Assembly: GCA_965644295.1 (NCBI GenBank)
Contig: CBFFRP010000089.1
Span: 76,359 to 140,358, forward strand
DNA length: 64,000 nucleotides
DNA from: Paraphysomonas bandaiensis
Lineage: Eukaryota; Protista; Chrysophyceae
Direction of reading: 5' to 3'
Shown here: positions 52,462 through 56,951 of the stretch, in pieces
How positions within the stretch are numbered: the stretch's first letter is position 1
Layout of the letters: the number at the start of each line of letters is the position of its first letter
Program-made: the position numbers and the translations under genes
Notes under the pieces: generated by a model
What the model saw: only the letters and a program-made list of their open reading frames with translations
What the model was told of the DNA's origin: nothing
Database searches by the model: none

Positions 52462-54300
52462 GCCGTCACGGTGACGCTTTAAGGGCTTCAGTAGCTTGAT
52501 GAGAGAAACAGAGATGTGTGGGTATGTATCAGCTGGATATGTGTGTGTGTGTATATGTGTGTGTATGTATGTATATATGTGAATGTGTGTGTTAATATTT
52601 AAACTCAACTCCTCACTGCTCTGCTCTATAACTAAATACGGCGGTATACGGTGTAGTATACTGGGACCAACCTTGGGTTGTATTTGGACCGTATAAGCTG
52701 TAGTATATGTAGGATGCCTGTATAGCAGGCTACAGTATACTTGTCTTGTATATATGGTATACCTGGTTGGTATACGGATGTGGCTGCTCATAGACGATGT
52801 GATAGTCAGTCCAATGACAACACCTCTTGGAATAAGCACCCGTGTATCCTGTATGAAGAACCTCCTGTGGCGCATGCACACCGTAGTTCATGAAGGGGTG
52901 TTTAGACCCGATATATCACAAACTGCGGCCTTATAAATACACATGAATGTGATTCAGTTTCCAACACACCCTCAATAGCCCTCAGAGCGTATGGCACCAT
53001 AGTTCCATATGATGATCACATATGCACAGTGTGCTATAAACTTCAAGAAAACAAAGTAGCTCACTGATCAACCTACAAGCAAACAACGTTTTACACTTCT
53101 GAACGTGAAATACTGTGGATACCATTGACAGGACCGTAAATAACGTCAATATTATATAAATATAGGTGTCAAGTAGACATGCGGTTGTTCAACTTTGCTT
53201 AAGTTATAATTCTACGGATAGTATTCAATGTTGAACGTTGGAACAGAAAACTATTTCTTTGTGCATATGAACAAATAATTAGTTAGACTTTCACAATGTC
53301 AGCTACAAAAACTGCATACATCACGACGGGTGAGTTAATTGAGTAATGAATTGTAATTATTCTATACACTTTAATAATATCTAAATTAGACCATAGTATG
53401 TCCTCTAGCATAGTAGTTTTTTCTTATATTTAAGTACAAAGTATCCAATCGATATATTGTGAGTACCAAGAATATTTGAAGGGCGTATAGCGTATATTGT
53501 ATATTGATGGATATACTGCAGCTAAAGAAAATAATACCCTCACACCCTTTATTCTCCAAGACAACCCAAAATCAATAAATGGTATACAGGCTAATAGTTA
53601 TTGTCGTCAACGTTATTAGTATGACTAATCAGTAAGTAAACACATCCGTAGATTCCATTTTTAGTATTAGTAAGTATATGACTAATAGCTTTCTGTATAT
53701 GACTATCATAATATTGATTGCAGTTTATTGCAATAAATGTGAGCCACTTTAACAGAAACAATATTGATGGAAATTTTGGCCGGTCGAACAATCAATATAT
53801 TTTACAATACATTGCAATATACTGTACAATGTATTGCAGTTTAATATATTGTTTCCTAGCCCTGATTGAAACAATTTGAGAATATTTTTCTCTGTTACTT
53901 GACATATATATAGAAACTTGTGAGTGATCATACAGAAATTGTAGTCATCCTAAAACGCACATGAAGATAAGGAATAAACATACTCAGTCTAAGTATTTTT
54001 TGTCTACATTAAGGTCGCTGGGTTATCTTTTCAACATTTTAGATTATGGGTTACAGAGAAGTGTATATTGGCACTAACTCATATTAGAGTTTCAACCTAC
54101 ATGTATGGCTATGGAATGCGTAGCTTGTAGAAACAAAAGTACATCTCAAACGACAAGCTCGATACCGTAAACAGATTAGTAGCTGTTGTATATTTCCCTT
54201 CTCTACAGGATATGGGAATAGTATGAAAACCAAACACGAAATTGCTCAAAATGGCATTATTAAGAAAGCATGAGTGATCAGTGCCAAATACGCCGATAGC

Positions 54301-54646
54301 TTAACGGGCCCTCTGCCTCATCTTCCTGCGCTTGCGACGAAGGCGCCTCATCCTCTTCTTGCGCCACTTGGCACGCATACCACCATTGACGTCAAGAAGA
54401 AGAGTGACAGTGTCATCTTCCTCGACAACGTCGAAGAGGTCGCCCATAGCAACGGCCTTAGTTCCACAAACCAGGCGCTGCATATCTGCAAAAGATTTTA
54501 TATAAATAAAATAGAATAATGAATGACATACCGGCAGGGATGAACTCCACATCCTCGATCTGGTTCTTCAGGTCGGAGACAGTGGCGCCCTCCTCGACCG
54601 ACACCACGAAGGTGCGGTCCAATGATCGAACAAATATCTGAGGCAT
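54301..54646 (-). CDS. RPL41: ubiquitin-like domain fused to ribosomal protein eL41 (eS32)
   Basis: Exons 54646-54532 and 54485-54301 (46-nt intron) give a 74-aa Ubl ending NGG, followed by MRAKWRKKRMRRLRRKRRKMRQRAR*. Confidence 0.93.
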
Positions 54647-55127
54647 CGCTTTCAAGGCTTTCTGGTTGCTCAAAACCTGTATTGGAGGCGAGCAGACAGC
54701 AGAAGCAAATATATGACTGACTTGCTCATCAATTACCTTCATAGCATGACATATGCAGCCATCCAACTACAAAAATCTTCTATGGGTACTATAATTTCAG
54801 TTTATAGTTTCGACTTTTAGTGGCAATTTTTTCTTCACAAATTTTGATGTTGTAAATTTTCGACAACCATTTTTAGTATGGAAAGTCGAAGTATCTGGTG
54901 CTGTATGTGTGCATGTATGTATGTATGTATCTATATGGCATATATACGCTGCTGTATGACCACTTGCATTGGGACAATAGACTGTACACTATACACGCAC
55001 AGGAGTTAGCCTAACTGTGCAATACACTCACTCAACAGTTTCCCCTTCAGGATATAATCTAGTTGACCTTAAGGCTATTCATCAGTGTGTTGGTTGACTT
55101 ATTCTGTATATATATAACATCTCTCAG

Positions 55128-56951
55128 ATGATCCGAACGGCAGTCTTTGCGGTGTTGTGTGTAGTCGCATACAGGGGGGGAGTTACAGGACAGATCACTA
55201 CTAAAGTCCGTCCCCAACCAGAGCATCTTGATCTACATGGAATAGAGGAGTGCTGTTCGTATATAGACGATCCTGTTGCTCTCATGAACTGTGCCAACAC
55301 ATCTTCTTATAGTAACTTTGCAAGAGTTAACAATAACATAAGGGCGCATGGTGCTCCGACTCTTGGAGTGGGTATAGTTACATATGCAACTGAAGATATA
55401 TGGAATTATACAGCCTACTCACTTGCTGTCAATGAAGTGTATGCCGAGCACAATGGTTATATTATGCTGCATTTGGATCCAGCTACTGCTAAGTTCGATG
55501 ACTTCGATGCTAGATGGAACAAAATCAAGATATTAGAGGAGGCTCTAAATCCAGAGACTGGATGGGCACGAAATTTAGATTACGTCATGTGGGTAGATGC
55601 AGATTTAATATTTCTTGACCTTGGATTGCGGCTTGAGATGGTTGCAGCAGAGCATCCGAAAGCTCACGTAATTATATCCGCCGAGCATGCAGGTAGCAGT
55701 ACCCTAGTAAATAGTGGTACAGTCATGGTACGTAACACCAAATGGGCGAGACAATTTCTTGCAGACTGGTGGAATTTCGGCGCTAGAAAATTGTACAGCG
55801 ACCAGGAACAATTTGATCTTCTATATGAGTCTCGGCGAAGTGAGATGGAGAAACATATCGCTATTCTCCCTCCTGATGCTCTTAATTCTGATCCCCCTGC
55901 AATGACCAAACAGAAGCCCTACAATCAGGTACTTCATCTCATGGGTGAGCATACGCATTATCGTATGAAGGCTTTCGGGAGTGCGTACAAGGAGATCTGT
56001 CGGCGAACAGGTGGAGGGCCAGATTCGACTGCGCCTTTGGCTTTACAACTCACCAACACAGTTGAGAATCTCCATAAATGGACCTTAGAAAGTTACTTTG
56101 ATGAAATGACTGAGCGTATGGAAGCTTTCAAGAAGAAAATGGGCACTGGAGAGAATGGTATTAAGGAGGCTCGTCTACTGTCAAACTCGGTGCACCACTA
56201 CGCCCACGCTGTCGAGTATAGAGGCTTGCCTGGGGATGCTGAAACCTCTACTGACCTGCGCAACACCACTTTCAAACTGCTTTTTGAGAACTTGCAAAAC
56301 AGACGTGTGCTCAATGCGAAACATCTGAACGAGACTGGGCGCATCATGCAAGATTGGCCGGAGCTAATGAAGGCTGTATGTGAGGCGGGGCAGCACATGA
56401 CCTCTCTGGGACCCCCTGAGGAGAAACACAGAGTAGCACGGATAGTTATGGATTTACTACACGAGTTGCTCAAGCTTTGTCACCATCTTCAGCGCCCTGC
56501 CGTTATGCATATGATCGCTGCTCTGTATATGGATACAGGACTTATTGATTATTATGAGATGAAGCTCGATGAGGCACTAGTCAACTTTCACAAGAGCTTG
56601 AACTTAAACAGAAAGCTAGCTGAAAGCTCGGGAGACCATATACTTGTGAGTCCCATGACAATACTTGCCAATACGTATGCACAGCTGAAGCAGTACGAAG
56701 AAGCGTTCAATTACTACGAATCTAGTATCGCCATCACTGAGCGCCATTTGGGGACTACACACGACTCGCTTTCAGAGATATTGCTCAACCTTGCTACAGC
56801 GAAGTATATGACTGGCAATTTTAAAGAGGCTAGAAAACTAACCAGTCGAGCAATAGACATATGTATGCGTAACCACAGACCAGTTAGTGACTATGTGTAT
56901 CAACGTGCAGTTCAGCTTTATAATGAGTTGACTAGAGTAATGGAATTGTAA
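55128..56951 (+). CDS. GT34-like glycosyltransferase with C-terminal TPR repeats
   Basis: Signal peptide; YAEHNGY, RWNKI, WVDADLIF (DxD), VNSG and DQ; C-terminal TPR-like helices (LANTYAQLKQYEEAFNYY, NLATAKYMTGNFKEA). Confidence 0.85.
   Translation: MIRTAVFAVLCVVAYRGGVTGQITTKVRPQPEHLDLHGIEECCSYIDDPVALMNCANTSSYSNFARVNNNIRAHGAPTLGVGIVTYATEDIWNYTAYSLAVNEVYAEHNGYIMLHLDPATAKFDDFDARWNKIKILEEALNPETGWARNLDYVMWVDADLIFLDLGLRLEMVAAEHPKAHVIISAEHAGSSTLVNSGTVMVRNTKWARQFLADWWNFGARKLYSDQEQFDLLYESRRSEMEKHIAILPPDALNSDPPAMTKQKPYNQVLHLMGEHTHYRMKAFGSAYKEICRRTGGGPDSTAPLALQLTNTVENLHKWTLESYFDEMTERMEAFKKKMGTGENGIKEARLLSNSVHHYAHAVEYRGLPGDAETSTDLRNTTFKLLFENLQNRRVLNAKHLNETGRIMQDWPELMKAVCEAGQHMTSLGPPEEKHRVARIVMDLLHELLKLCHHLQRPAVMHMIAALYMDTGLIDYYEMKLDEALVNFHKSLNLNRKLAESSGDHILVSPMTILANTYAQLKQYEEAFNYYESSIAITERHLGTTHDSLSEILLNLATAKYMTGNFKEARKLTSRAIDICMRNHRPVSDYVYQRAVQLYNELTRVMEL

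Follow-up and report, generated by a model that had tools for sequence, protein, structure and literature searches.

The window, that is, the whole stretch of 64,000 nucleotides of Paraphysomonas bandaiensis DNA that was analysed, carries on its minus strand a two-exon gene encoding a ubiquitin-like domain (Ubl) fused to the ribosomal protein eL41. The features of this Ubl-eL41 gene are the following:

54647..54713, minus strand: 5' UTR of at least 67 nt, devoid of ATG (RNA contigs and script)
54657..54677, minus strand: 21-nt element of the 5' UTR, identical in both Ubl-eL41 paralogues (genome pattern search)
54646..54532, minus strand: coding part of exon 1, Ubl residues 1–38 and the first base of codon 39 (translation)
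54531..54486, minus strand: intron of 46 nt, GT..AG, phase 1, AT-rich (spliced RNA contigs)
54485..54301, minus strand: exon 2, ending with TAA
54379..54485, minus strand: first part of exon 2, Ubl residues 39–74, ending NGG (translation)
54304..54378, minus strand: eL41 coding part, 25 codons, the first being its own Met (Pfam PF05162)
54301..54303, minus strand: stop codon TAA
54242..54300, minus strand: 3' UTR of 59 nt, with the poly(A) addition site at 54242 (RNA contigs)

The Ubl starts at the ATG in 54646 (minus strand), the frame of exon 1 consisting of 38 codons and 1 nt. The spliced product is 99 residues long and comprises the Ubl (residues 1–74) and a complete eL41 (residues 75–99), with NGG immediately followed by MRAKW at the junction. 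The translated Ubl includes the motifs QIFVR, TVSDLK and QRLV, as well as Lys27, Lys48 and the C-terminal NGG. Counted by eye, it contains 15 Asp/Glu versus 5 Arg/Lys, and the eL41 part, whose own Met lies at 54378, has 17 Arg/Lys in 25 residues (68%). The eL41 part matches Pfam PF05162 (E 1.5e-9) and exon 1 matches positions 1–36 of the PF00240 profile (E 3.6e-5); in P0001, a database protein identical to the spliced product, both PF00240 and PF05162 score above their curated cut-offs. The searches used the separate exons or P0001, the joined exons being employed only for the identity check and for dN/dS. A preliminary description of this DNA had proposed a 74-residue Ubl followed by a complete 25-residue eL41 that keeps its Met, and the translation, the splice and the Pfam matches agree with it, as does a recount of the charged residues of both parts. 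As attested by Pfam and by the RNA splice, a ubiquitin fold and a complete eL41 are found in a single ORF, and GG directly precedes the Met-Arg of eL41; these are features by which the Ubl-eL41 family is recognized. The Pfam matches, the RNA splice and the selection described below confirm that Ubl-eL41 is a real nuclear gene and not a chance arrangement.

Many marine metatranscriptomes contain these exons, and four metatranscriptome or DNA runs were compared with positions 53900–55100. In a cDNA library (X4), a contig of 421 nt (record 19) extends from 54684 to 54532, jumps to 54485 and continues to 54242, where it is followed by poly(A). In X2, a library selected for poly(A), the contig of record 13 shows the same 46-nt skip (54486–54531) and reaches 54687 on its 5' side. 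Contigs of two metatranscriptomes therefore carry exactly the splice of the gene; the DNA run (X20) retains the intron and is colinear with the genome. The X1 and X4 contigs both end at 54242 and continue with 22–24 T on the plus strand, i.e., the tail of a minus-strand mRNA. The furthest 5' reach of RNA is 54713 (X1, record 7). A script found no ATG in 54713..54647, which makes the AUG of the Ubl the first one on the mRNA; counted from the 5' end, six ATGs come before that of eL41 at 54378. The preliminary description had named initiation only at this eL41 Met as one observation that would speak against the fusion. The contigs show the extent of the mRNA and not ribosome starts, and since the transcripts begin upstream of the Ubl ATG and so many AUGs come first, initiation solely at 54378 is very unlikely. 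Internal initiation at the eL41 Met was rejected on the same two grounds, the 5' end of the transcripts and the AUG count.

Paralogues, relatives and viral copies

A six-frame HMM search of the 62.5-Mb assembly (669 contigs) returned two eL41 matches, both fused to a Ubl. The second copy, on contig C153, shares about 81% nucleotide identity with the first over the gene only, the flanks being unrelated. The exons of the two paralogues are equal in length, and a 46-nt intron interrupts the same codon in both, with unrelated sequences. The amino acids encoded by exon 1 are identical, and the two proteins differ at six residues, all located within Ubl positions 49–62. The dN/dS of the Ubl is 0.044 for this pair, at a dS of 0.83, which marks the Ubl as coding sequence under constraint; the eL41 part shows no amino-acid change (dN 0) at a dS of 1.1. 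As the preliminary description had suggested, free eL41 was also looked for: none was detected in this draft assembly of 669 contigs, either by the six-frame HMM search or by two degenerate half-peptide DNA patterns designed for an intron-split eL41 micro-ORF. An extra pattern match on C297 corresponds to an unrelated basic stretch and not to eL41. Within the limits of the draft assembly, the fusion is the sole detectable source of eL41 in this genome.

The 21-mer located in the 5' UTR (54657–54677, minus strand) is identical to C153:85760–85780, and a genome-wide search that tolerated up to 3 mismatches found no further occurrence. This identity contrasts with the synonymous sites of the pair, which are near saturation (dS 0.83–1.1). 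The 21-mer could act in regulation or translation as an element specific to this gene. It was rejected as a motif common to ribosomal protein genes, as it is found only upstream of the two Ubl-eL41 genes.

A database protein search with exon 2 as query, in which a length filter drops the free 25-residue eL41, returned 616 matching proteins. Most of the best 120 of these 616 have 94–103 residues and many carry both PF00240 and PF05162. The best 120 include 94 full-length members, all of which carry a Ubl (PF05162 in 94/94, PF00240 in 84/94), and the window product is 54–83% identical to most of these aligned members, a similarity that places it within the family. The best match, P0001, is a Paraphysomonas transcriptome protein (MMETSP1103, genus taxid 36769). 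The named hosts include chrysophytes and synurophytes (Paraphysomonas, Mallomonas), diatoms (Proboscia, Cyclotella, Stephanopyxis, Eucampia, Chaetoceros, Arcocellulus, Minutocellus), brown algae (Choristocarpus, Discosporangium, Scytosiphon), the xanthophyte Tribonema, the raphidophyte Heterosigma and oomycetes (Phytophthora, Pythium, Lagenidium). The named hosts together belong to Ochrophyta and Oomycota, which bears on the question of distribution raised by the preliminary description. Two entries labelled with hosts outside the stramenopiles were set aside: the protein labelled with the ciliate Mesodinium pulex (P0015) nests beside Paraphysomonas in the tree and the one labelled with the foraminifer Nonionella stella (P0046) nests inside the diatoms. 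Judging from these positions, both EukProt/MMETSP entries are probably transcripts from prey or contaminants.

The tree largely tracks host groups, with the oomycetes monophyletic at 99/91 and the window protein grouping beside other chrysophyte-side sequences. This pattern fits vertical descent of the fusion from an ancestor of ochrophytes and oomycetes. In the alignment of the 94 full-length members, eL41 is near-invariant, most of its columns being invariant, and little or no variation is seen at the Ubl positions K27, E31, G53, D63, G73 and G74; Lys48 is not conserved. When the four viral ORFs described below are added to the 94 members, GG is found before the MR of eL41 in 96/98 sequences and AG in the two others. 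The Ubl is net acidic in all 98, with a charge of -4 to -13 (median -8), and the residue equivalent to Arg72 of ubiquitin is Asp, Asn or Glu in most of them and Arg in none. The acidic leader proposed in the preliminary description is thus present in every member examined. A Ubl unconserved in relatives, the other observation that it had named as contrary to the fusion, is not what was found, given the 94-member alignment and the dN/dS of 0.044.

A scan of IMG/VR identified four contigs binned as giant viruses (Nucleocytoviricota) that carry intronless ORFs of 98–100 residues with a Ubl, GG and eL41:

L041:9998–10294: viral Ubl-eL41 ORF (IMG/VR bin)
L042:150–446: viral Ubl-eL41 ORF (IMG/VR bin)
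L043:590–886: viral Ubl-eL41 ORF (IMG/VR bin)
L044:9998–10300: viral Ubl-eL41 ORF (IMG/VR bin)

The L041 contig has a GC content of 24% and dense intronless genes, with a topoisomerase II, an RFC-like ATPase and a class II aminoacyl-tRNA synthetase nearby. A neighbouring gene encodes a minor capsid protein P8 of the chlorovirus type (PF19065, E 1.6e-34), and L041 is credibly of viral origin. L042 and L043 belong to the same clade as L041 and show no hallmark gene in the stretch examined. L044 (42% GC) carries genes for XRN, RFC subunits and DnaJ and a TBP-like gene; its viral origin is plausible but less certain. The copies from L041, L042 and L043 display a dN/dS of 0.14–0.18 in the Ubl and 0.04–0.10 in eL41, indicating that both parts are maintained in these three viral copies. 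In the tree, they share a single long branch on the side of the chrysophytes, with L044 located elsewhere, which suggests, but does not establish, two captures by viruses.

A full-text literature search found no report of eL41 in viruses of eukaryotes. The eL40 of the giant virus FloV-SA2, reported as the first ribosomal protein of a eukaryotic virus in a paper that leaves eL41 unmentioned (PMC11499249), is likewise a small eukaryotic ribosomal protein that is fused to ubiquitin or a Ubl in cells and is encoded by a member of Nucleocytoviricota. The viral eL41 copies come from metagenomic virus bins and not from isolates. If confirmed in isolates, they would add to the very few ribosomal proteins that viruses of eukaryotes are known to encode.

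Nature and proposed fate of the leader

The best 60 PDB sequence matches listed for the Ubl are all ubiquitin (residues 3–74 versus 2–76, E about 1e-6 to 1e-7). The identity between the Ubl and the genome's own ubiquitin is 35%. The Ubl is not an authentic ubiquitin: of the ubiquitin lysines it keeps only Lys27 and Lys48, lacking Lys6, 11, 29, 33 and 63, and it lacks Arg72 and Arg74, its tail being LDVNGG versus LRLRGG. An AlphaFold2 model that used the 94-member alignment as input (mean pLDDT 90.3) predicts a beta-grasp leader with strands 3–7, 12–16, 42–45, 48–50 and 64–68 and a helix 23–34. It also predicts one long helix (73–98) running straight through the GG junction; if real, this helix would make the GG less accessible, and it may be a modelling artefact. 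The best 50 Foldseek matches listed are all ubiquitin, with target-normalised TM-scores mostly around 0.8 and 32–38% identity. Both the sequence matches and the predicted fold point to an acidic leader that is a diverged paralogue of ubiquitin. The preliminary description had called this leader FUBI-like, which stands as a functional analogy. As a statement of kinship it finds no support in the PDB sequence and fold rankings (the best 60 and best 50 matches, respectively, are all ubiquitin, at 35–36% identity). Among language-model feature neighbours, FAU/FUBI-eS30 clusters come next after the family itself (0.88–0.89), which provides a lead only.

eL41, with its 25 residues, is shorter than the ribosomal exit tunnel and, in established structures, sits at the interface of the ribosomal subunits. 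On the evidence assembled here, the locus is most likely an expressed precursor gene for eL41 that belongs to a conserved ochrophyte/oomycete family; together with its paralogue it accounts for all the eL41 detectable in this genome. The production of eL41 from it most likely proceeds as follows. The ribosome would initiate at the Ubl AUG and synthesize the 99-residue protein. The folded acidic Ubl would lengthen the ORF, enabling a peptide of 25 residues, 68% of which are Arg or Lys, to emerge from the ribosome; acting as a chaperone in cis, it would probably also shield the charge of eL41 and keep it soluble. A protease of the deubiquitinase type would then cleave after Gly74, and free eL41, with its own N-terminal Met, would be released and reach the subunit interface. 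The presence of GG directly abutting the eL41 Met in 96/98 sequences fits processing after GG. The cleavage and the role as a chaperone, both of which the preliminary description had also put forward, as well as the action in cis and the type of protease, are extrapolated from what is established for Ub-eL40, Ub-eS31 and FUBI-eS30 (reviewed in PMC8122580).

The tail of the leader bears on the enzymes that may be involved. Ubiquitin-specific proteases and the ubiquitin E1 read the Arg residues of the ubiquitin tail. As the Ubl tail has no Arg at the positions corresponding to ubiquitin 72 and 74, the protease may not be a standard reader of the ubiquitin tail, and activation of the free Ubl by the ubiquitin E1 is not to be expected. 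A role of the Ubl as a modifier would consequently be possible only with dedicated enzymes. That the released acidic Ubl is also a conjugatable modifier, or a free factor acting in trans, with an activating enzyme of its own, appears unlikely. It would account for the retention of the C-terminal GG in 96/98 sequences, for the near-invariance of K27, E31, G53 and D63, for a strong constraint that extends over the whole Ubl beyond its core (dN/dS 0.044) and for the purifying selection that acts on the Ubl even in the giant-virus copies (dN/dS 0.14–0.18). However, the GG is equally explicable as a protease site, the ubiquitin E1 should refuse a Ubl in which Asp, Asn or Glu, and in no case Arg, takes the place of Arg72, and Lys48 is not conserved in the family. 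FUBI, the analogous leader, is not known to have a firmly established conjugation system. A bolder version, in which the Ubl would be a stramenopile-specific modifier or free factor with its own partners and viruses would use both Ubl and eL41 to remodel the ribosomes of their hosts, is decidedly speculative and improbable; if true, it would make eL41 the second known ribosomal protein of eukaryotic viruses.

Two other readings concern the precursor itself. The fusion might remain uncleaved, the Ubl staying on the ribosomal eL41 as a lineage-specific extension, which we consider very improbable. Uncleaved FUBI-eS30 and Ub-eS31 impair subunit maturation. As eL41 is buried at the subunit interface, an N-terminal domain of 74 residues would be expected to interfere there, and an uncut leader to block the placement of eL41; moreover, the GG is almost universal and eL41 always retains an initiator-like Met directly after it. 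What would speak for this reading is the continuous helix predicted over the junction, together with the precedent of Ub-eS31 from Giardia, whose ubiquitin-like part is reported not to be cleaved (review, PMC8122580). The remaining reading is that of an artefact of the gene model, only the eL41 micro-ORF being translated and the Ubl frame being a relic or a separate upstream ORF. It could draw on the retention by eL41 of its own ATG. It could also draw on the fact that eL41 is a stand-alone micro-ORF in most eukaryotes. However, the Ubl ATG is the first on the mRNA, with six AUGs ahead of that of eL41, the Ubl and eL41 share one stop-free frame in the 94 homologues and the 4 viral ORFs, and the Ubl has a dN/dS of 0.044. 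The status of the Ubl ATG as first AUG, the shared stop-free frame and the constraint on the Ubl effectively refute this last reading, whose probability is close to nil. The additional ribosomal Ubl fusion proposed in the preliminary description is a genuine one, and a precursor processed after GG is the reading retained here.

The fusion among other ubiquitin fusions

The reason why ubiquitin is fused to ribosomal proteins is still debated, and the accepted partners are eL40, eS31 and, in some lineages, eS30. Ub-eL40 (UBA52, Ubi1/2 of yeast) and Ub-eS31 (RPS27A, Ubi3 of yeast) have, like Ubl-eL41, an N-terminal ubiquitin fold whose GG abuts a small basic ribosomal protein. They carry authentic ubiquitin and are a main source of ubiquitin in the cell, whereas the leader of Ubl-eL41 is 35% identical to ubiquitin and strongly acidic. 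FUBI-eS30 (FAU) resembles Ubl-eL41 in having a diverged and acidic leader, ended by GG, on a very basic small ribosomal protein, but differs from it by its partner (eS30 versus eL41). With eL41, the smallest and most basic ribosomal protein becomes a fourth fusion partner, fixed over a large group of eukaryotes. Its leader has drifted far from ubiquitin and is still acidic, GG-ended and, according to the model, folded. This offers a natural way of testing whether the leader serves its tail (length of the ORF, solubility, timing of assembly) rather than the supply of ubiquitin.

The fusion is already recorded and thinly described, many stramenopile members being public, and it is not new. The exact Paraphysomonas protein is present in MMETSP/EukProt, many members of the family are found in UniProt, where they are named '60S ribosomal protein L41', and the architecture is listed in a review (PMC8122580). 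In the supplementary table of this review by Martin-Villanueva et al. 2021, ubiquitin~Ribosomal_L41 (PF00240+PF05162), which is the same family as the window product, is represented by one protein, and the text cites eL41 among "a few cases" and "anecdotic fusions" (PMC8122580). The sentence on the eL41 fusion is repeated in a 2024 review (PMC11354881), and Ubl-eL41 goes unmentioned in a study devoted to the ubiquitin fusions of algae (PMC6332867). A full-text search, whose coverage lies mostly outside subscription journals, found no paper on the breadth of the fusion, its status as sole source of eL41 or its properties. Whereas the review counted a single protein (PMC8122580), the family is found here in chrysophytes, diatoms, brown algae, a xanthophyte, a raphidophyte and oomycetes; in addition, eL41 is detected in this genome solely as the fusion. 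The main value of the present data lies in this breadth, in the apparent exclusivity of the fusion for eL41 and in the viral copies. For annotation, eL41 should be sought in these genomes as a protein of about 99 residues and not as a micro-ORF.

Besides Ubl-eL41, the Paraphysomonas genome encodes a polyubiquitin and has two Ub-eL40 genes and two Ub-eS31 genes. Two eS30 genes each follow a match to the ubiquitin family, one on C338 (L033:1080–1689) and the other at C288:34576–35072. The former, which was read over the whole gene, contains two introns, begins with an exon of two codons and encodes an authentic ubiquitin, with LRLRGG directly before eS30, and not a FUBI-type Ubl. The separate FUBI-eS30 that the preliminary description had suggested looking for is replaced, at least on C338, by a fusion of eS30 to authentic ubiquitin, and the partner of the window Ubl is eL41 and not eS30 as for FUBI. 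Paraphysomonas has therefore four fusions of ubiquitin or a Ubl to ribosomal proteins, the eL41 partner being the one with a diverged leader.

Each of these four fusions exists in two copies, on contigs C89/C153, C123/C353, C172/C275 and C338/C288. This pairing suggests either that all four were duplicated long ago as a set or that the copies are strongly diverged haplotypes, the eL41 pair having a dS of about 0.8–0.9 and unrelated flanks. Within the window, Ubl-eL41 is transcribed divergently to a 607-residue ORF on the plus strand (55128–56951), from which it is separated by 54714–55127. The RNA contigs of this neighbouring ORF begin around 55007, leaving about 290 bp as a shared promoter region.
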